DNA from: Adineta vaga
Lineage: Eukaryota; Animalia; Rotifera
NCBI GenBank assembly: GCA_021613535.1
Contig: CP075495.1
Location: 6,634,001 to 6,698,000 of the forward strand
DNA length: 64,000 nt
Direction: 5' to 3'
This document shows, piece by piece, positions 26,913-41,100 of the stretch. Both the position numbers and the translations under genes were made by a program. The notes under the pieces are model-generated. The model had not been told where the DNA came from. It ran no database searches and saw only the letters and a program-made list of their open reading frames with translations. Position 1 is the first letter of the stretch; every line of letters begins with the position of its first letter.

Positions 26913-29900
26913 ATGAAATCGAAAAAACGAGCTGAAATTCGTGATCTACATTCGAACGATGAATGGGATGTTATGCTCAATAAAGATGGTTTAAAATAAG
27001 TTCTTATAAATGAATATTTCATTCTTTCTATTAATGATCGTTTTCTTTCTTTTCTTTTTACAGTTATTGATATTTATCAAGAATGGGCAGGTGCTACTGT
27101 TGTCTTAGAGGATATATTTCTTAAATTGAAACGAACATTAATACATACGGAATATTTAACATTTTATTCTGCTAATTGTGAAAATGTTGATCTGTTGAAA
27201 CGTTATCGTGGTTATTGTGAACCATTGCTATTTTTCTATGGAGTATTTACTATGAAAATTTAATCTGATCAATTGATTTAAAAATATAATATTTTTTAGA
27301 ATAATGTTTTAGTACATATAGAACATCAAGTGAATGTTCCAAATATTGAGAAAGCTATTGAAGAACAATTAAATAAGGAATTGCAAGCAATGAAAGGAAA
27401 TCAAAAGCGTGAAGCAGTAAAATTGTTTTTAGAAATAAATTAAATAAAGATTGTCGATAATGAGATAGTTAAATGAATTATTATTAACGAAATATGCTGA
27501 ATATAATGGTACTCAACAAACAACACGTTCAAGTATTAAAGGATCAGTATCAAATGACCCAATGTGTAAATGATTGAATGATATGTATTTAAGAGACTCT
27601 ATTTAGTTTTACTATTTTATATAGTATACAAAGACGAATCATCAAGTTTACGAAGTTTATTATTGAAAACAGCAGAGAAAATCGATCAAGATTATTGGCT
27701 TAGTTCAGGTATCTTTGCTCTTATCATTGTCATCGATTTAACATGTCGATTCATTTTAGAACCGTATAGAATAGGTGTAGCACTTTTTGTTATAAAACCT
27801 GATCTACTTGCTAGTGGAAAAAAAGATGAAATTCTTGATCAGGTAGATAAAATCAAAGTGACAAATGTATTTCTCGAACGTTTTGAAACTTTTCTTTAGT
27901 TACGTCAAAGAGGATTTGTTATTCATACCCAGGCTGATAAATTACTAGATAACGAAGATATGATGAAAATCTTCCAACCAGTATTATTTGACTTTGACTA
28001 AATATTATTTTCCATGAACTATTTCTTTTTCAAAGGATCAAGACATTATCAAAGAATTCAATCGATTTATGTCGAGTGGTCCAAGTGCTTATGTAGTCGT
28101 ATCGAAAGGTTTCACAGGACGATCAACATCTGATGATCTTCGATCTATCATTGGTTATCATGATCCGGATATTGCAAAAACAAATCATTCTGAATCATTA
28201 ACTGCTATCTATGGAACAGATTCCATTATGAATGGATTTTATTCAAGTGCCAACAATCAAGAAGCACTAAAGTTGTCATTTCTATCATACATAACAAAGA
28301 TTTGATTGACAAGAATATTGATTAATAGGGATATTCAAATTGTTTTTCCAGATTATCAATATCCTTTAATTGACGGCAAATCTACTGATGAATACGTTCA
28401 TAAAACAGCGACATTATGTCTTCTTGGACCTATACAAGTACAGACAAAGAAAGGTATGCTCGAAAAATCTTTGTTTAAAATATAACTTTTGATTGATTTC
28501 AAAATAAAGATGCTATCATACAAGCAATAGTTAAACGTGGATTTGAAATACGTTATAAAAGAATGTATCTATTTCGACCGGATGAAGTTGAATCATTGTA
28601 TATTAAACATCGTAATGAAGAGTTTTTCAAAACATTAATTGATGCTTATACTGCGTGAGAAATAATTGAACACGAAACGATTTATCTATGTGTTCTTTAT
28701 ATTGTTAGTGGACCATGTTTATTACTTTATGTCGCCAAAGAGAATTGTGTATCAGATTTTAATGAATTTCTAGGACCATTTTCTCGTGAAGAATTTAGTC
28801 AAATACCTGGAACGTATGTTATTAGTCTGTTTATTATAATTGCATATAGATGTTCATCTTTTCTAGACTTCGACACGATTTCGATGAACCTTCAACACCC
28901 GTGGTAATGAAAAGTTTCGCATCATCTCAATAAAAACTTTCGAATTCAGACGACAATTCATGGTTCGGAAAGTATTATCGATGCACGAAAAGAACTTGAA
29001 CAATTCTTTTCATATCAACAAACACTAACTATTATCAAACCAGGTTTAACAATGAATCAAAAAGGTATTCATTATAAAACAAAAAAAGAATATTTCTTTC
29101 GCATATCGATCTATGTATCCTAGATGATATTGTTAGACGATTGAAATCCAATGGTTTTACAATTACGGCAAAAGAAACAAGACATTTAACAAAAGATATT
29201 CTGACACAATTCTATGCTCGACATCAAGGTTTACCATGGTTTAATGATTTTATTCAATTTATGAGCAGGTGGAGAAAAAAAATTGCTTTCATTTATATTG
29301 TATCGATATTTGATATGCTAGTGATACATGTGAGATATTAATACTCGCACGAGAAAATGCTGGTAAATGAACTTCTGTAAACAAAAATATGATTTATGAA
29401 GTTACTTGGAAAGACAGAAAGAAATTTGAAATTCTCATCATTTTTTAGTACAAGCTTTACGTGAAATAATGGGTCCGGTCGATCCTGTACGTGCCAAAAC
29501 TGATGCACCAGATTCGTATGTCTTTGATAAATGATAAACGTGAACTTTTACTCTTTTTTGTCTATTATTAATTGAAGAATTCGAGCAATCTATGGTTTAG
29601 ATATTATGCGAAATGGCTTACACGCATCATCAAATAAGAAACATGCTCGAGAAGAAATTCGTCTACTTTTTCCCGATTATATTTTTCTTAAAACTAAACC
29701 AATACCTTTTCATTCCAATGTTTCGTCTAGTTCAGTTCGATAATTTAGTTTTACGATTTTTTAATGATGATATACTTTTAGTTGACGCAACAGTTTTGAC
29801 TAATTTAACAATATCTGGTGAAAATGATTTGTATCATCTTGAATCACATGGTATGAAATTTTTCAAATGTCATAAAGAATGAATTTTGCTTATACATTTG

Positions 29901-32509
29901 AAGAAATTGTATATGAATTTTTTGTACATACTCGTTTAAATGAGAGTAAAAATGAAGATTCAGCTGTTTTTATTACATTAATTGGTAAAGATAATGAAAC
30001 AAAGAAATTTCTTCTACAGTTTTCGGATAATACAATTCATCCTTTACAATCGAATAAAATCGATATATTTCATTTTGTTGATCGTGATGTTGGTATTGTA
30101 AGTAATGAAATACAATGAAAATAAATCACAGAAAGTAGTAACTGGATTGTAGCCGAAAAATATTCGATTGTCACATGATGGACGAGGTTTTCCAAAGAAC
30201 TGGATTTTAGGAGATGTTGAAATAACAATGACGAATAGAAATAAAACCTACAGGTGACGTCATCTATTGTTATCATCGTTCTAAATCGAATAATATCAAT
30301 GTAGATTTGATATCAACGAATTGATCGATGAAGAAAATACAAAGTTGAATTATCCTCTGACAAATACCAAAGGTAAACTGACCGATATCGCAACACACCC
30401 TCAAGATTTTACTCTATTCATAGATTTTGAACCTATGAATAAAGGCAATTGTGTCATTATTATACAAACAGGCAGTGCTAAATATGCGAATACATTCGCT
30501 GATTGCAGGTAGAATCTTTATTTGCATATTTTCAAATAAACAAATTTTTTCATAGCATTCTTCTCTCGGGTTCTAAAGGTGTCTATGCCTTTTCTCTTCA
30601 TCAATCACTAACTAATCGTTTACCGTTTCAAAATCGTTATCGTGATATATTCCTTGTGGAAGTTGATGAACACTTAAAACAAATTGAATATATTGTTCTT
30701 GAACATAATAATGAAAATTCTTCACCTGCATGGTTTGTTGATTTTGTTATGATTAAATTATTGAATAACCAACAAGAATATTTGTATATATATATCATTG
30801 TAAACAAATGATCATTAGAATTGAATCAAATTTTTCTTTCTAGCTTTCCTGTCTATCGATGGCTTTCAATCGATTATCTTGATGGAAAAACGAAGATTAC
30901 ATTAGCAACAGATAATCAAAATATATCCTACAATGAAAGTTCGATAATCAATCATTCATAATAATTAAATATTGTTTTTGCTTTTCGTTCAATAGATCTT
31001 TTAGAAGATCGATCGAATCGTAAGTGTATACATCAATTTACAGGCTAATTCATTTTTTTGTAGTTATTCGATATGAAATTCATCTTGTAACTGGTTCGAT
31101 GTTTGATGCCGCAACCAATTGTCCAGTTTGGTTGACGATCAATGGTACAAGAGGATCGATTATTAATAAATATTTGGAAATAGCAGAAAATGAATCATAT
31201 CCATTTGAACCAGCAAATGATGATCTATTTATTTTATATGACGTCGATATTGGAGAAGTGTGTGAAAATAAAGCAACGAATGATCGTTGATGATTTGTTT
31301 GTAGATAGATAAAATGATCTTAGGTCATGAAAGTATTTCTGCGGAACAAGGATGGTTTGTTCAATCAATATCAATACATATACCATCGAAACAATTTCAT
31401 AGTGAAAAGTGAGCTAGAATAAATTGAAAATGAATATCTAGAATCTCTTTTTTGTCTAGATTTAAGATTAATAAATGGTTGAATTCAAAACGGATCGATG
31501 CTATACCATTAATTGAAGTTCAAGTACGAAAACCAATCAAATGTAAGATGATAAAAGAATCTAAATTTTGATTACATAGTTCAAATCAATAGCATATCTA
31601 TTCTATTCGAAAGATAATTGAAGAATGTCATTTTCTATCATTTTCTTATAGTACGTCGAAACATAAAAAATCAACGTACAGTTGTACCACAAGTAGTTTC
31701 TAACGCCACGCTTGTGTCAATTCATGAATATGGTACTGTCGCATTGATTTTCGTTCAACTCTTCATCAATAAATGTTACTCATATCTTGATTTAGAATCA
31801 TCATATACAATCTATATATTGACAGAAAATTTTCAGTCTGACATGAATAAACTAAATATTTTCATTGATTTAATTATGGATGAAACACTCTCAACTGGTT
31901 ATATGCGATTGAAATGTGATTTGCCAATTCGTGATAATATAGAAAACAATGTTTTATGTAAAGTTCAAGCATTTGGAAAAAGAATCGATAGAGTAAGAGA
32001 TGTTTTCATATTGTCCTATATTGATTCAATAAATTCTTATCGTTCAGATCAATGCAATACGTTTACTTATTCGTAAGTTAAGAGCAAATGTTAGTACAAT
32101 AGTTAATTTATTATGTATGTAGGTACACCTGATCAGAGAACATATTGGTTTCCTCGTTTTATTCTTATTACAGTCGATGAAACGGAAGAAATCTTTCAGT
32201 GAGTAATAGTTTGATAAATGCATATGTTTTCTATTTTACGATGAATATTTGCTAAGATTTCATAATTCCAAATGGCTTCATTATGCAAATAGTAATAGTT
32301 TCGGAGCAATTACTATTTATTTAAAAGTAGTTTCTCTCGAGTCTGTAAATCAAGATTCGAAAAAATTCATTCAATCATCATCCGATAACATTGAACAGAA
32401 GAAAAATCATCAAATTGAAAATCAATTAGGTTGGATAAAACAATCCTATACCAAAGAAACAGGAAATACTGTGATTGATAAACACTTGACGAAACAAAAC
32501 AAAGACTGA
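26913..32509 (+). CDS. NME8/TXNDC3-like protein (thioredoxin-like + 3 NDP-kinase domains) apparently fused to about 4 PLAT/LH2 domains
   Basis: Trx-like VIDIYQEWAGAT...RYRGYCEPLLFFYG; NDK motifs LFVIKPD, FMSSGP, TIHGS, TLTIIKPG, MGPVDP, RAIYGLDIMRNGLHAS; PLAT motifs VFITLIG, IRLSHDGRG, EHNNENSSPAWFVDFV, FPVYRWLS, YEIHLVTGSMFDAAT. Confidence 0.85.
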
Positions 32510-33286
32510 TATTTTGCTCTTTTCCTTTGTTTCAATTTAATGACAACTAAAATAAACTATATTTATTGGAAGAATGCATCTAGAAAACTGTTCTTCGAAT
32601 TCAGCTTCGTATTCAATCGATTAAATCATCGAAATCACTACTAGCTATAACCTTTTCGAATGAATTCATATTATTTTTATCATCTTCTCTTTGCATAAGT
32701 TAATAGAAAGTTTATGTCAATGAATAACATTCTCTTGCTCTCTCTTTTCACTTATTCTTTGTTCTTCTATCATCAACGTTCGATAAAAATTATATTCGCC
32801 ACTGCTCTCTTAACAATAACAACCATCTGTTCAAACAAAAAATATATAAAGTATTGATTTGAATTCAATCAAAATACTAACGCCATCTATTCACATGATT
32901 AAATTAGTTCGTTCAAATTTTTTATTTTTTATTAAAATACATTTCTTTTATATTCATGATTATTTTCTCTAATAAATCATATTATTTATCAAACCTCTAT
33001 TTAAACAAAGCTAAAAACGCTAATATAGAGAATAATACCTCGTTAATGGCCTCGGCCATTGTATTCTATTCTATTCTGTGTGTGCGCGCGTGTGTTGGCT
33101 GCCTTCATCTTCATCATATGTATGTTGTTTTTTTTTAAATTTCATATTTTAATTTTTTCTTTTAAATTTTTCTTTCTCGTAGTTCGTCGAATGTGAGCCT
33201 CCACTTACTGAAAAAAAACTTGTCTTACTAAAGCATTCATTGACAATAAATCCGTTTTTAAACGACCTAATTTCCAAATATCTAGA

Positions 33287-36200
33287 ATGTTTCTTCCACC
33301 CATTGGTCAACCACCAATCTCATCATCAATTCACGGCAATGAAAGTATCAATGGAACAAATATGATTAATACAAGTACTAGTTCATCAGGTTCATCAACA
33401 TCAAATGCAATGGGTCTTCCACCTCCACCTCATATGACATCGATGCCATCGACACCTCCTGGAAGTGGCATCATGACAATGCTTAATCCTCCACTTGATT
33501 TATCACCACCACCACGACCAGATTTCGGTCGTGAAGGTCGTTCAATAAAATTACGTGCAAATCATTTCTCCATTCGAATCCCTCCAATACTTATTCAACA
33601 TTATGATCTTAATATTCAACCAGATAAATGTCCAAAACGCGTCAATCGTGAAATTATTGATACAATGGTTAATAAATTTCAAAATATATTTAATACTCAA
33701 CATCCAGCATTTGATGGTAAAAGAAATCTCTACACAAAAGATCCATTACCATTTGGTCGAGATCGTATTGAACTTGAAGTCACTTTACCTGGTCCTGGAG
33801 AAGGACGTGATCGATGTTTTAAAGTACAAATTAAATGGGTCGCACAAGTTAGTTTAGTGAGCTTACAAGAAGCTTTACAAGGACATGGACCACCTGTACC
33901 AAATGAAGCTGTTTCAGCACTTGACGTTATTATGAGACATTTACCGAGTATGAAGTAAGTATTTGTTTGAGAATCAATTATTTCAACTATTGCTTCCTAT
34001 TTCATACTCTACAGAACTCATAGGTAATAAGTTTTCGAGCTTTTCCATTGACATTGAAAGACAAAATCTGTTTATATGCAACGAGAAATCTGCACATCAC
34101 ATTGATTTGAATTCTATTTAGATATACACCTGTTGGTCGTTCATTTTTTTCACCACCAGATGTTCAATACAATCCATTGGGTGGTGGTCGTGAAGTATGG
34201 TTTGGTTTTCATCAATCTGTTCGACCATCCTATTGGCGAATGTCATTAAATATCGATGGTATATAATTTTTTACTAAAAATGACTTTTTTTAGTCTAAAA
34301 TTCATCTTTGTTTCTTTAGTTAGTGCTACAGCTTTTTATAAATCACAGCCTGTAATTGATTTTATGTGCGAAGTACTCGATATTCGAGATATACAAGAAC
34401 AACGACGACCATTGAATGACGCACAACGAGTTAAATTCACAAAAGAAATCAAAGGTTTGACAATCAAATATTGAGAAAGAGTATCACACTTATATAGGAT
34501 ATGTAACGAATGATTTTCTCGCATAGTAGAACGTTAAAATAGATATAGTTATTATTTGAACAGATCGATAATAATAAGTGACTTTAAATACAAGGGAAGA
34601 AACGTTTCTATTGTTGAATGTTTACTTACGTTCGTATTAAATATTTTATCTTTTAATTAGGTCTTAAAATCGAAATAACACATTGTGGTAACATGAAACG
34701 TAAATATCGTGTTTGTAATGTCACTCGAAAACCTGCTCAATATCAAACGTAAGTTGAATAAATTCACTTTTGGATATGCGACTATTTTATTTTTATTCGT
34801 TTATCTGTTCAGTTTTCCTCTTCAACTTGAAAGTGGTCAAACAGTTGAATGTACTGTTGCAAAATATTTCTACGAAAAACATCATATGAAATTACAATAT
34901 CCTCATTTACCATGTTTACAAGTTGGTCAAGAACAGAAACATACTTATCTTCCACTTGAAGTAAGAATTTTCTCATGAAAATTATTCTTTTCTCTATAAA
35001 ATAAACTTTGTCTAGGTTTGTAACATTGTTCCCGGACAACGATGTATTAAAAAATTAACTGATATGCAAACATCGACAATGATTAAAGTATGTATTTGAT
35101 TCATTCATCAGTATTCCCTTTTTACAGATTTTTGTATCGCGAATTTATTAATATATATATATATATGTATAATATATTTTTGTAGTGGAGTGAGGTAGAG
35201 TGTTATTTATTCATATCGAATAAGCATGATTCTTTTCTTTGGAATGAACTTCTGAATACATAAATTTAATTCAATTCACATTGAGATCGTTCCTATCTAT
35301 ATGTTATTGTAGAGTCAACCCGATTCACCTCAGGTAAAACTAAAATCAATAAATAAACTCAACTTCTTACACATATATGCACTGTCTTTCTTCGCGTGCG
35401 CGAAATAGACGTCTGTTTTTATTTCTTTTTTGTCTAAGTAATGAAATTATTTGAGCACATGCGTAAATATAACCGCTGTTTTTCGTTTTGTTTGGGATGA
35501 ACTTTAAAAAGAAACGATCTTGTCCTAATTGGTCAAAATGTTTGAATGACAATAACAAAGATAGGAACGATTGATGTTAATGAAAATTTGATAATGAGAC
35601 TTGCGAAAAATTTAACAAACAATCAGCACGACTCTTTTCATCTTCTTTGTTATGTAAAATTTATTCATTTTCTTATCCATTAAACTTATAATAATGTTTT
35701 GGAACAACATATATTTATGTCTATTTTTAGGCAACTGCACGTTCAGCACCCGATCGAGAAAAAGAAATCAATAATTTGGTAAGTTTTATATTGATATAAT
35801 GACAAAGAATATCTTGTTGATGAATGGCATATTTTAGGTGCGCAAAGCGGAATTTAATAATGATGTTTATATAACTCATTTTGGAATTAATATTTTAACA
35901 AATATGACCGAAGTCATGGGTCGTGTATTAAATGCACCAAAAATTCAATATGGTGGTCGTGTAAGTCATAATCAATTGTATCTTTTATTGGATCATTTTC
36001 TATTTTCATCTTTTAGACTAAAGTCATTGTTACACCTAATCAAGGTGTTTGGGATATGCGTGGTAAACAATTTCATACGGGTATTGAAATTCGTACCTGG
36101 GCTATTGCATGTTTTGCACCTCAACGTAATTGTAATGAAGCTGCACTTCGAACATTTACTCAACAATTACAACGAATATCAAATGATGCTGGTATGCCTA

Positions 36201-38170
36201 TTGTTGGTCAACCGTGTTTTTGCAAATATGCAACTGGTATTGAACAAGTTGAACCGATGTTTAAATTTCTTAAAACATCATATAATGGTTTACAATTAAT
36301 TGTTGTGGTTTTACCTGGTAAAACACCTGTTTATGCTGAAGTCAAACGTGTTGGTGATACTTTAATTGGATTGGCTACACAATGTGTTCAAGCAAAAAAT
36401 GTTAATAAAACAACACCACAAACTTTATCAAATTTATGTTTGAAAATTAATGTTAAATTAGGTGGTGTCAATAATATTCTTGTGCCAAGTGCTCGACCTA
36501 TAAGTGTGTTTCGTGAACCGGTTATTTTTATTGGTGCTGATGTCACACATCCACCAGCCGGTGATCGATCAAAACCATCAATTGCTGCTGTAAGTTGTCT
36601 TTTTCGAAAAAAGAATTCTTGTTTCAGAATTAGTTTGATTTTTTTCATAAAAATTTAATAGGTTGTTGGATCAATGGATGCACATCCATCAAGATATGCA
36701 GCTACTGTTCGTATACAAATGCATCGTCATGAAGTTATTGCTGAATTATCAACTATGGTTCGAGAATTACTTATACAATTTTATAAATCAACACGTTTTA
36801 AACCAGCACGAATTATTCTCTATCGTGATGGTGTTAGTGAAGGTCAATTTGCTCATGTACTTGCACATGAATTAATGGCTGTACGTGAAGCATGTGTTCG
36901 ACTTGAAGCATCTTATCAACCGGGTATCACATTTATTGTCGTACAAAAACGTCATCATACACGTCTCTTTTGTGCTGATAAGAAAGAGCAGGTAATTTGA
37001 TAATATCAAAAACTTAGATGATCAAATCAATCAATATTGATAATTTTGAGCAGAGTTTAAAGTAGGGTTTAATATTTACAAGAACATCAAGATCTTATGG
37101 ATTTGATAGACACATTAAGACGTGGGCAATTCCTTTTCTTTAACTATACTAGTATCTTGGTATATGTATTCATATTCCATGAGAGATGAATTTTTGAATT
37201 TCACCAGTTTCTTTGCAAAACAACTCGTCAATTATCTAAGTAGAAAGAGAACATCTGTAAAATACCGGTAACTTGTAACACCACTAAATCTCTATAGAAT
37301 AAAGACATAAACAAGAAATTGTCATGAAAGTTGTTGTTTTGTTATTGTCAAACTGAATAGAAATTATGTAAACTGAGGTCACATGACATTAAATTTTCAT
37401 TTGTACGTGTCGAACATTGTCTGGTTTGAATTAACTTTTCAGGATAGATTGACATTATAAGCATATTAACTAGAAGTATTAATTAATTTCACCTGGAAAA
37501 TTATATGCGTCCTGACCTTTCATGATCAGTGGCTATGTTTAATATGTCGTTACCTTTTTACTTGATAATATTGTTTTTATAATGTCATCGTGTACAGTTG
37601 AAACTAATCGATGATTGTTTTTCATAGAACTCATGAATCAGTTCATTAATAGGTTATAAAATAAAATTTCTTTTAATTTAGTGTGGTAAAAGTGGTAATA
37701 TTCCACCTGGTACTACTGTTGATGTGGCTATAACACATCCAACAGAATATGATTTCTATTTATGTTCTCATGCTGGTATACAAGGTACATCTCGACCATC
37801 ACATTATCATGTTTTATGGGATGATAATCATTTTTCTGCTGATGAATTACAAGCATTAACATATCAATTATGTCATACATATGTACGATGTACACGTTCA
37901 GTATCTATACCAGCGCCAGCTTATTATGCTCATCTTGTTGCATTTCGTGCACGATATCATTTAATTGAAAGAGAACCTGAAAGGTAAATATTTTGATTGG
38001 AAATAATACTTATTACATATTCAATATTTGCTTTTTCTTTTCTCTTTAATTTTAGTAATGAAGGTTCACATCAATCATCCAATGGTGATTCTAATGGTCA
38101 ACAACAAATTCAATTGAGTCGTGCTGTTACTGTACATCCTGATTCGGCTCAAGTCATGTATTTTGCTTAA
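33287..38170 (+). CDS. AGO1: Argonaute, AGO (miRNA) clade, N-PAZ-MID-PIWI with intact DEDH tetrad; 12 constitutive coding exons plus a 5'-UTR intron near 33120-33183
   Basis: [97 protein letters not shown]-terminal VMYFA*. Confidence 0.98.
34015..34023 (+). other. Candidate 9-nt microexon in Argonaute (PSMK-THR-YTP)
   Basis: ttcctatttcatactctacag|AACTCATAG|gtaata; upstream intron would be 60 nt; frame preserved, no stop. Confidence 0.6.
35186..35194 (+). other. Candidate 9-nt microexon in Argonaute (WSE)
   Basis: atatttttgtag|TGGAGTGAG|gtagag, phase 0/0. Confidence 0.5.
35313..35333 (+). other. Candidate 21-nt microexon in Argonaute (SQPDSPQ)
   Basis: gttattgtag|AGTCAACCCGATTCACCTCAG|gtaaaa, phase 0/0, GC-rich island in an AT-rich intron. 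Confidence 0.6.
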
Positions 38171-41100
38171 TTATAAACAAAAACAAACAATGAATATTCT
38201 TTATCCTAAGACATGCTCATATCTATTCTATCTACAATGCTAGATCAATTTCTTTTTCTCTTGTTTTTATCTCAATAGATCAATTCAATGTGTGTTCTCG
38301 TGTAATTGTATCTCTTCTTGTCGCAATCTGCCGCAAAAAAATCAATGTCTTTTTTTCTCTCTCTTTCTCTCTCTCTTTTGCTCTTCTCTTTGTCTCGTCC
38401 GTATTGATCTCCTGTAAATATTTCAATCTTTGATTCTCTATTGTCTCCTCTTGTAAGTGCGCAATCGGAGTTGCAATAGAGATGCTCTTTGCTCTCTATC
38501 TTTATCCATCCGTCAAACTTGACTACTACTATTCATTATAGTTACATTTACAACAGTGCAATGATATACATACTTATATATATATATACATACATACATA
38601 CATATACACAGACGCACACACATCGCTTTCTTCTACGAGTAGAGCAAACATTAGGAAAAAAAATCGCTAAAAGTCTTCGTGTAGTATTTGCACTACTTTT
38701 TCAAATCTCTTTTTGTCTCTGTGTTTGTTCGTGTCGTGTAACAGTGTATATAGGTACCATCTTGTTTCTTTTCGCAGTGATGGGGGCGCGAAACATTCCC
38801 AAATATGTCACTCTGTTTCGTTTAAAAGTAGTGCTATTCCTAAACAGTGTGTGTGCGTATTTTTGAATCTTGTCGTCGTCTTCGTCGTCAATTTCCCGTC
38901 CTTCATTTTGATTAATTGCAATAACGAATGATTTCTAAACAAAACAAAAAAACCTCCAAAACCAAAGCAAAACATTAAGATCATCACTCTTTTCCTCCTC
39001 ATCTATTTCTATAATATTTAATGCAAAAAAAGAATAATCTAAATCTATTTCGATTTCTTTTCTTTACTTCTTCCTTCATACTCTTATCATATCTGTCTAT
39101 GTGTAGAAAACTCATTAATAATCTTTTTTTTCTGCTTCGTTTCTTTTTACTCATCAATACATCGATCCGCTTTCCGAATGACAAGAAAAACAAGCCCTAT
39201 TCTTCTTAATACATATATACATTCTATGTTTGAATCAATATGTGTGTATTTTTCCCTGTCTCTCTCTCTCTTTTTTCTTACTGCTCGCAACTAGATGAAA
39301 AAAGGCGTACAACTAACGACAAAACTGTGTACGTGTTTAACAGATGAGAGAAAAAATTATAATTCTTTCTGGATGTTCTTCTTTTTTTTCCTCTCACCAC
39401 CATGTGTGTGTGTGTATGCGTGTAACAAAATGAATTAATGTGAATGTGCCTCTTTTTTTTCCTTTCATTCTGTTCTTTTCACTATTTCATTCATTATTTC
39501 CTTTGTTGTTCTGATAACAAAGCGTACCAATGATATACTTACTTTGACTTAATCACTCATAGTGTACACAAAATAATATTGATGAAAATCAAAAAAAAAA
39601 ATTTCGTCAGAGCTTATTGAATTAAACTCACTGTACAACAGCAGCTGATATAAAAGATAATCAGATCGAACATATCGATGATTAATATTGAAAAAAAAGT
39701 TTGTTTTCTACTTGTTGGATGTACTAAGAGATTGAAGAGAGGAAAGGAAAGAAACATTTATGAAAAACATTGTGAAGGTTATGGATACTATTTTCCTTGT
39801 TTATGCAACCAGACGATTCGTCATCACCGTCAGAAGGCTATTTACAATCATTAATCAAAGAAAGAGAGTGAAATATCAGGTTATACTTTAAGAATAATCC
39901 GTATTATTCATATGTTTGATTAATTTTGAATGTTTAAATGAAAAAATGGCTTAGTTTATAGTAAGTTAAATACAAGTATATGTATGTAGGATATTCTTTG
40001 CTATATGAAAGATTGATTATAAATAAAAAGGTTTAATTGTAAATGGCCTTTGTTCGAATATCTATAGAAAATACACCTTTTTTTAATATCCATATCAATC
40101 AAATATTCATAAGTTTTTCTGTAGCCTTGGCTAAAAAGAATGCACATTGAACTTTAGTTGTACCTGTTTTATTTTCTTTTTATAAATATACAATATGTTA
40201 ATTATAAAAAGAGCGAGCGGAGAAAATGAAGAAAGTTTGATAATTATTATGCTTTGGTTGACAACAAGAATGCGTGAGAGAAAAGATGAGTAATGATATA
40301 TTTTTAAAACGAGGGGCGATTGCCAGCAGCTTGCCTTGATGTAATTAGTCTAAATTAACGGATATAACAATGTGTCAAATACTTTTCAAATTTTCTACTT
40401 ATTTTTTTAATAATACCGCATGATTTGAAAAATAGTAAACCGAAGAGATAGTTCGACACCTTCCTTGAGTTATTATAAATCTATCTATATATATATATAT
40501 GTTCTTTTCAATACCTAATTGATTACTTTTTTACGTATAAAATTGACTGAATCATTTTATCAAATTTCTATTGAAATTAGATGTTTTTTTTCAAAATGGA
40601 CCAAATATTTAGGCATGGAGTTGAGAAGCATAAAGTACATTAGATATATAATTAGAAAAAAATAGTATTATGAATAATAAATTAGTTTCTTTTTCTTTTT
40701 GCGAGACCTGTCAGTTTATCTTTGATTTCTTTTTGTTATTTCAGTTCTCTCTAGAAAGAAGTCATCTGGTATACGCGTACTTTTTTTTTGTGTTCTGCGC
40801 GTATATAATATGTGCATGCGCTCTCGCTCGTTTTTTATCACATTTTCATTGCAACTTTCATGGCGTGATGTATTTTTATTTATCTTCTAACATCACATTC
40901 TATTGGATCAATTATTACAAATACATAGTCCATCACAGTTAAGTAGTAGAAAATGTATTTCGTAGAAATAACTTGAATTGCATTCATCAGATGAAAAACT
41001 TTTGTCAGTTTTTATCTCTGGAAATTTATCGTCATTGGCTTATTCGATGGATAAATAATGTGTGTGTTCCTATGCTAGTAAAAGGACTAGTTGATTTAAT

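Follow-up and report, generated by a model that had tools for sequence, protein, structure and literature searches.

We analyzed a 64,000-nucleotide (nt) stretch of the genome of the bdelloid rotifer Adineta vaga (GenBank assembly GCA_021613535.1, contig CP075495.1, positions 6,634,001 to 6,698,000 of the forward strand; here, the window), which carries an AGO1-type Argonaute gene. Four of the eleven introns of this gene are long, and two of these, introns 1 and 6 (I1 and I6), hold three exon-like cassettes of 9, 9, and 21 nt (uE1, uE-a, and uE-b) whose splice sites, frame-keeping lengths, and flanks are conserved across bdelloid lineages. We consider it somewhat probable that uE1, uE-a, and uE-b are conserved, regulated microexons that are included at low abundance or only conditionally, with the canonical form as the dominant mRNA. 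An earlier reading of the letters of the window (the sequence-only reading) had claimed that the introns of this gene are long only where candidate microexons sit. This fits I1 and I6, whose lengths are conserved, but fails for introns 3 and 10 (I3 and I10), whose lengths are not. The gene, its exons, and the four long introns are placed as follows.

33287 to 38170, forward strand: AGO1-type Argonaute gene, 12 exons and 912 codons, with phase and frame checked exon by exon

33287-33954, 34122-34258, 34320-34454, 34661-34748, 34813-34960, and 35016-35087, forward strand: AGO1 exons 1 to 6

35731-35778, 35838-35960, 36017-36589, 36662-36991, 37682-37983, and 38056-38170, forward strand: AGO1 exons 7 to 12

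33955 to 34121, forward strand: I1, 167 nt, phase 2, at the border of the Pfam domains ArgoN and ArgoL1

34455 to 34660, forward strand: I3, 206 nt, in the PAZ part

35088 to 35730, forward strand: I6, 643 nt, phase 0, inside helix 7

36992 to 37681, forward strand: I10, 690 nt, in PIWI

Judged by its sequence, the gene is an ordinary microRNA (miRNA)-class Argonaute, the AGO1 orthologue of a bdelloid rotifer. Pfam searches of the exon-wise translations returned the domain order ArgoN-ArgoL1-PAZ-ArgoL2-ArgoMid-Piwi above curated cut-offs, and the catalytic DEDH residues lie in conserved contexts in exons 9 to 11, motifs that predict slicing activity. The protein is 98.2% identical to the Adineta steineri "Protein argonaute-1" and 95 to 97% identical to Rotaria AGO1 (exon pieces). 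A second copy (an ohnolog) in the same genome lies on the minus strand of contig 5 (L008; G000:C5:11432500-11442499) and shares 98% protein identity over exon 9. Introns I1 to I11 of the window copy measure 167, 61, 206, 64, 55, 643, 59, 56, 72, 690, and 72 nt, and the division drawn in the sequence-only reading between seven introns of about 55 to 72 nt and four of 167, 206, 643, and 690 nt was matched by the gene model and by the borders of RNA contigs. The placement that it gave for the candidate microexons (the N/L1 border, PAZ, and helix 7) also agreed with the Pfam hits and with an alignment to human AGO2 (hAGO2). In this alignment, I6 interrupts the protein between the equivalents of hAGO2 R366 and A367, one residue past the I365 equivalent. 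Helix 7 of hAGO2 spans L356 to T368, is conserved across eukaryotes, touches the target at g6-g7, and shapes both the speed and the selectivity of seed recognition (PMC8632932).

The cassettes named in the sequence-only reading (34015-34023, 34527-34532, 35186-35194, and 35313-35333) all exist, keep the frame, and contain no stop. We scanned for every frame-keeping, stop-free unit of 3 to 27 nt bounded by AG and GT (AG/3n/GT, with slashes marking the exon borders) and used dinucleotide shuffles as the control. The counts were 2 versus 1.2 shuffled for I1, 6 versus 3.3 for I3, 8 versus 6.4 for I6, and 4 versus 10.9 for I10. The pattern occurs at the chance rate in all long introns, as expected of any long AT-rich intron, and the observation that the long introns hold cassettes is thus trivially true. 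About 17 unconserved chance cassettes share the AG/GT borders, the 3n length, and the lack of stops, a definition that does not discriminate by itself. With the pattern itself at chance level, it takes a comparison between lineages to tell the three real candidates from these decoys, and the case is a caution for microexons picked out by eye.

The comparison set comprised the ohnolog together with loci from about 15 more bdelloid-type AGO1 lineages, among them Rotaria sordida (both ohnolog types) and Rotaria magnacalcarata. These loci were reached through fragments of exon 9 in the protein collection, through a single metagenome scan, and through named gene records of Rotaria. An exon-based tree placed the bdelloid set in one clade against two non-bdelloid relatives (L016 and L041). 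The same tree was set aside as a means of splitting A and B ohnolog clades, as only the B-type group was modestly supported (82) and composition was heterogeneous. Short introns were saturated, with about 55% identity. Where present (11 bdelloid loci), I1 always measured 157 to 190 nt, and I6 measured 260 to 808 nt in 15 of 15 genomic bdelloid lineages. One bdelloid-type lineage from the metagenome (L026/L029/L030) has lost introns 1 to 4 and 8 to 10 and kept introns 5, 6, 7, and 11; within its 260-nt I6, uE-a and a downstream GCATG are intact.

The two other long introns differed in this respect. Across relatives, I3 measured 0, 48, 51, 62, 147, 206, 211, 337, 380, 594, 1029, or 2353 nt and I10 measured 0, 54, 74, 203, 222, 263, 339, 669, 690, 1012, or 2798 nt; neither showed similarity between the A and B copies, and nothing inside them was conserved across relatives. 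On this comparison, I3 and I10 have expanded in individual lineages, and the cassettes inside them have arisen by chance. We rejected the I3 cassettes (including the 6-nt unit at 34527-34532) and the I10 cassettes as microexons because they are at chance level and unconserved and lie in introns that are short or absent in relatives. Alignment of orthologous introns, which the sequence-only reading had proposed as a search for conserved islands, gave conserved cassettes and flanks in I1 and I6 and nothing in I3 and I10. Introns 3 and 10 reach 2.3 to 2.8 kilobases in the R. sordida locus L105, a lineage-specific expansion. Intron 7, 59 nt in the window copy, is long (375 to 1680 nt) in the second A. 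vaga copy and in L011, L105, and L109.

The three conserved candidates, and an element that accompanies the first of them, are as follows.

34015 to 34023, forward strand: uE1, 9 nt, CAG/AACTCATAG/GT, adding T-H-R after Lys at the ArgoN/ArgoL1 border

34037 to 34052, forward strand: conserved element GAGCTTTTCCATTGAC downstream of uE1, with GCT..T..ATTGAC nearly invariant in I1 alignments

35186 to 35194, forward strand: uE-a, 9 nt, TTTGTAG/TGGAGTGAG/GTAGAG, coding for W-S-E and inserting between the hAGO2 R366 and A367 equivalents

35313 to 35333, forward strand: uE-b, 21 nt, TTGTAG/AGTCAACCCGATTCACCTCAG/GTAAAA, coding for SQPDSPQ and inserting at the same helix-7 site

In I6, uE-a is retained almost invariant (with TGC, TCG, or GGG variants) in 13 of 15 lineages. 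Retention of uE-b is equally wide (13/15), with 21 nt in 12 lineages and 24 nt in one (an in-frame gain of 3 nt), never with a stop and with a predicted peptide of the form SQxDSPQ or SQQELxQ. Two lineages are missing uE-a and two others uE-b, and every lineage has at least one of the two. Identity to the window was 0.90 for uE-a with its splice sites and 0.72 for uE-b, versus 0.44 for the rest of I6; the block around uE-a (35177-35199) stood at 0.88, the upper end of a range of 0.73 to 0.88 for the conserved blocks. We also scored splice sites with position weight matrices (PWMs) derived from some 100 constitutive sites in the AGO1 genes compared. The donors of uE-a and uE-b fell at the 34th and 73rd percentiles of constitutive donors; among constitutive acceptors, the acceptors of the two cassettes ranked at the 12th and 7th percentiles. 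Both donors are within the constitutive range and in the top 1 to 9% of intronic decoys, and unconserved cassettes were mostly far lower.

In I1, uE1 takes the general form AG/A(A or G)YnnnYAG/GT and is exactly 9 nt long, with AG and GT retained, in 10 lineages, while its inner bases vary. Both of its splice sites are weak by PWM. In the R. magnacalcarata copy L107, uE1 has drifted to 10 nt and the downstream element has decayed along with it. Taken across the set, an origin of all three modules before both the ohnolog split and the Adineta-Rotaria split would best account for their distribution. A PLAT-domain gene lies directly upstream of AGO1 both in the window (26913-32509) and in L107 (1-710), a shared synteny that supports orthology of these two copies.

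Three further observations concern uE-a. A (TA)n microsatellite (35140-35183) lies just 5' of its acceptor and is missing from other lineages. The cassette with its donor reads UGAGGUAG, the 5' end of let-7; the bases downstream are unconserved and there is no hairpin partner, and we dismissed the match as coincidence. A conserved pairing partner for uE-a was likewise rejected, the best partners differing in place and sequence between lineages.

I6 also contains conserved elements outside the cassettes.

35224 to 35249, forward strand: GCATG (35224-35228) and then the block TTCTTTTCTTTGGAATGAAC, downstream of uE-a; as RNA, the GCAUG core resembles an Rbfox site

35283 to 35312, forward strand: left arm of a predicted duplex, made of the pyrimidine tract and acceptor AG of uE-b, reverse complement of 35549-35576

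35549 to 35576, forward strand: right arm of the predicted duplex, ACAATAACAAAGATAGGAACGATTGATG, identity 0.85, about 240 nt downstream of the uE-b acceptor

35391 to 35404, forward strand: GC-rich near-palindrome TTCGCGTGCGCGAA, conserved in all lineages with uE-b, about 60 to 100 nt downstream of uE-b

35610 to 35646, forward strand: conserved island ATTTAAC..CAGCACG.CTCTT..ATCTTCT, about 85 to 120 nt 5' of the exon 7 acceptor

Rbfox proteins use GCAUG sites of this kind to enhance the exon upstream. In all 13 lineages with uE-a, GCATG lies 14 to 40 nt past the uE-a donor, and the I6 of both lineages without uE-a has no GCATG anywhere (0/2). The duplex arms lie 170 to 306 nt apart across lineages and would form a stem of about 22 base pairs (bp). 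Its predicted energy was -25 to -34 kcal/mol in 12 of 13 lineages, with a shuffled median near -10, and the duplex appeared in both the minimum-free-energy and the centroid folds of 35270-35600 (z = -2.6). The near-palindrome TTCGCGTGCGCGAA sits in an intron of 28% GC and could form a 5-bp hairpin or a dimer-binding DNA site. Conserved blocks contain two instances of the motif TTTGGRATGAA, one following uE-a (TTTGGAATGAA, 35240-35249) and the other about 160 nt past uE-b (TTTGGGATGAA, 35489-35498), which may be a repeated protein-binding site. A UGC beside the acceptor is typical of microexons that depend on SRRM4 and its eMIC domain. In the window, the 35 nt that precede uE-a and those that precede uE-b contain no TGC, and both cassettes lack this signature; a TGC upstream of uE1 is unconserved, and one upstream of uE-b is found in some B-type lineages only.

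RNA evidence for A. vaga came from four RNA-type runs, each of a different study (X1, X17, X19, and X5), in the form of contigs, an assembly level at which rare variants are dropped. All eleven AGO1 junctions were reproduced by RNA contigs at the borders of the model, the eleventh (I11) through matching loose ends instead of a joint. I1, I3, I6, and I10 were all spliced out whole, exon 1 was joined directly to exon 2 and exon 6 to exon 7, and the record coordinates of contigs spanning exon 3 to exon 9 leave no surplus letters. Since the cassettes are skipped in all contigs, the dominant AGO1 mRNA is the canonical 12-exon form without cassettes. Absence at the contig level limits cassette inclusion only loosely and is compatible with a minor isoform. 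Separately, the I10 region 37018-37645 is covered in the deepest run (X17) by low-depth contigs, at about 3 to 4 versus about 245 on exons (about 1.5%). These contigs carry several base differences and small indels, and they could represent I10 retained in RNA of a different allele or strain, or else a distinct transcript. No such cover was seen over I1, I3, or I6.

Gene models from Rotaria speak to inclusion. The R. sordida model P0247 (CAF3634886.1) includes uE1 (PSMK-AYR-YTPVG), and its locus carries TATAG/AGCTTACAG/GT in I1; a sister model of the same gene has no uE1 insert. A partial R. magnacalcarata model, P0246 (CAF4057214.1), includes uE-b (TSTMIK-SQQDSRQ-ATARSAP), and its locus carries the matching 21-nt uE-b. 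Both models sit in the 90% cluster of bdelloid AGO1 proteins, and the genomic cassettes match them exactly. The Rotaria annotations were made by BRAKER with same-species RNA sequencing reads aligned by STAR (PMC7943196). These models are suggestive of alternative use of uE1 and uE-b. They also show that the claim that standard gene callers would miss such exons was partly wrong, BRAKER having called both. Among the public models and contigs examined, no model or transcript included uE-a. In three other R. sordida models (P0127, P0256, and P0257; 1265 to 1516 amino acids), AGO1 is fused to a downstream zinc-finger nuclear-receptor-like gene, which is probably an annotation merge.

We propose that three alternative-exon modules housed in I1 and I6 are the reason why these introns stay long; each module combines AG and GT sites and a fixed 3n length with conserved flanks of its own. 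Inclusion of uE-a would be promoted by the downstream GCAUG in an Rbfox-like manner. uE-b would be kept skipped by the duplex that occludes its acceptor unless the stem is opened or is outrun during transcription. Included rarely or conditionally (by cell type, stage, or stress), the cassettes would give rise to AGO1 variants changed in helix 7 or in the N/L1 hinge. For the sequence-only reading, in which the gene is diversified by microexon splicing, this is a partial outcome. uE1, uE-a, and uE-b are conserved in their AG/GT sites, 3n lengths, and flanks in both ohnologs and about 15 lineages, and two of them are included in Rotaria models; the cassettes of I3 and I10 drop out, and only the skipping form was seen in the four RNA runs. 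The further claims of that reading, combinatorial use of the cassettes and forms that differ in loading or target recognition, are hypothetical. On the two points that were to count jointly against that reading, contigs were without a cassette, but cassette conservation exceeded that of the intron (0.72-0.90 versus 0.44).

Several results weigh against the microexon interpretation. No cassette was present in any contig of the four RNA runs, with zero extra letters at I1, I3, I6, and I10, and a spliced bdelloid-like contig (L039) is also canonical and free of cassettes. The Rotaria gene models are predictions. At the position of I3, other R. sordida models (e.g., CAF0913523.1) insert 24 nt that match nothing in six other I3 sequences, which shows that microexons peculiar to one lineage, or spurious ones, can enter models of this kind. 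No Rbfox gene was demonstrated: a six-frame search of the genome with Fox-1_C (PF12414) matched nothing, and the controls were equally silent. The duplex arms are nearly invariant and thus offer few compensatory changes; matched changes are isolated (a G-C to A-U change in L032, a matched TA insertion in L107, and a case in L020), and some lineages are mismatched. The residues encoded by uE1 are poorly conserved, and its freedom from stops follows from the YAG consensus. For uE-b, pN/pS (the ratio of nonsynonymous to synonymous differences) was 0.46 in frame versus 0.58 and 1.36 out of frame, a weak signal from few sites. uE-a is more invariant than a coding 9-mer requires, and its few changes are nonsynonymous.

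Much of this would suit the main rival, which we regard as unlikely. In that account, the AG...GT pairs and their flanks engage the spliceosome but are not destined for mRNA, and no protein isoforms arise; the units could be decoys that gate removal of I1 and I6 and thereby set the AGO1 level, or helpers for a short-intron spliceosome. The skipping form seen in all four RNA runs and in L039 is what it predicts. The nucleotide invariance of uE-a and the poorly conserved residues of uE1 fit constraint on RNA better than constraint on protein, the coding signal of uE-b is weak, and the uE-b acceptor is buried in a strong predicted duplex. A decoy, however, has no need of a 3n length, which is kept in all intact copies, including the one with the change of +3; a downstream GCAUG is typical of an inclusion enhancer; and the Rotaria models that include uE1 and uE-b were guided by RNA sequencing. 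Nor are these poison exons, since all of the cassettes are stop-free and keep the frame.

It is improbable that the islands in I1 and I6 instead serve an intronic transcriptional enhancer or the precursor of a small noncoding RNA, with the splice-like dinucleotides being incidental. For some conserved blocks (the TTCGCGTGCGCGAA palindrome, TGTTTGGGAT, and the AGCACG island), no part in splicing is apparent, and the inverted repeat can be read as a hairpin precursor, but its arms, 170 to 306 nt apart, are unlike an miRNA hairpin. An Rfam search of 33000-38600 at E ≤ 1 gave a noise match only, with no known RNA family in the long introns, and I6 had no RNA contig even in the deepest run, in which I10 was covered at low depth. 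Moreover, the strongest blocks coincide exactly with AG/3n/GT units that have good pyrimidine tracts and donors. That the long AT-rich introns hold only chance AG...GT pairs, with length set by neutral drift, agrees with the shuffled counts in every intron and is correct for I3 and I10, but for I1 and I6 it is refuted by their conserved lengths, the three cassettes shared by about 15 lineages and both ohnologs, the co-occurring motifs, and the complementary arms.

We thus retain the interpretation of uE1, uE-a, and uE-b as rare or conditional microexons. A more specific form of it, which we hold only tentatively and consider doubtful as a whole, is that minor AGO1 isoforms gain 3, 7, or 10 residues in helix 7 and 3 residues at the N/L1 hinge, that the GCAUG (for uE-a) and the 22-bp stem (for uE-b) govern the choice, that the system predates the genome duplication of bdelloids and is kept in both ohnologs, and that up to 8 forms differ in their target-recognition kinetics. 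If true, a conserved and regulated means of inserting 3 or 7 residues one position after the I365 equivalent would offer a natural experiment on how splicing can tune target recognition by miRNAs, and two tiny exons, one GCAUG, and one stem would make a simple test system. Even if the cassettes are never translated, an I6 that is long in every lineage, a locked acceptor, and an Rbfox-like site would point to splicing-level control of a core miRNA effector, set in a short-intron genome.

We compared the gene with Argonautes elsewhere. It resembles animal miRNA-class Argonautes (human AGO1 and AGO2 and Drosophila AGO1) in domain order and DEDH contexts, shares about 80% identity with the solved human AGO1 and AGO2 over N-L1-PAZ-L2, and has a helix-7 sequence, TSTMIK/ATARSAPDR, identical to that of other animal Argonautes. 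The bdelloid gene differs in carrying conserved candidate inserts at both sites. Neither insertion site was interrupted in about 60 Argonaute transcripts or loci of other animals and about 240 database proteins, and none of these roughly 300 sequences interrupts helix 7. Unlike the bdelloid gene, some other taxa (L016, L021, and L022) have no intron at the helix-7 site. A search for helix-7 inserts with residues 385-441 of P0246 found none in 244 matches, which are 90%-cluster representatives of limited lengths and hence uninformative on isoforms. We found no paper linking microexons to an Argonaute gene. Many database isoforms of vertebrate AGO1, AGO3, and AGO4 (e.g., P0316, P0320, and P0342) lack the exon that follows ...EEISRL and with it most of L2, a change unrelated to the helix-7 site, and one database match (P0036) resembles a fragment derived from mammalian or human AGO2.

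Among splicing systems, recursive splice sites share with the cassettes the occurrence of splice-site pairs within long introns of a genome whose introns otherwise run to about 55 nt. We rejected a recursive site or ratchet point because the AG and GT lie 9 or 21 nt apart and are not juxtaposed, and because joining an exon to a cassette regenerates no GT. Systems in which long-range RNA pairing occludes a splice site or loops out an exon have complementary conserved arms, one of them here over the uE-b splice signal; support from covariation is thin in the bdelloid gene, and its duplex is a predicted one. Like Rbfox-enhanced cassette exons, uE-a has a GCAUG downstream of its donor, followed in many lineages by GAAUG, although the motif here reads AGCAUG or CAGCAUG (flanking base A or C) and not UGCAUG. 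Compared with the alternative microexons of bilaterians (3 to 27 nt), the candidates differ in that only the skipping form was seen in the contigs of this genome and in that no UGC lies by the acceptors of uE-a and uE-b, but they agree in size (9, 9, and 21 nt), in keeping the frame, in conserved splice sites and flanks, and in a location within a structured, functionally critical protein surface.

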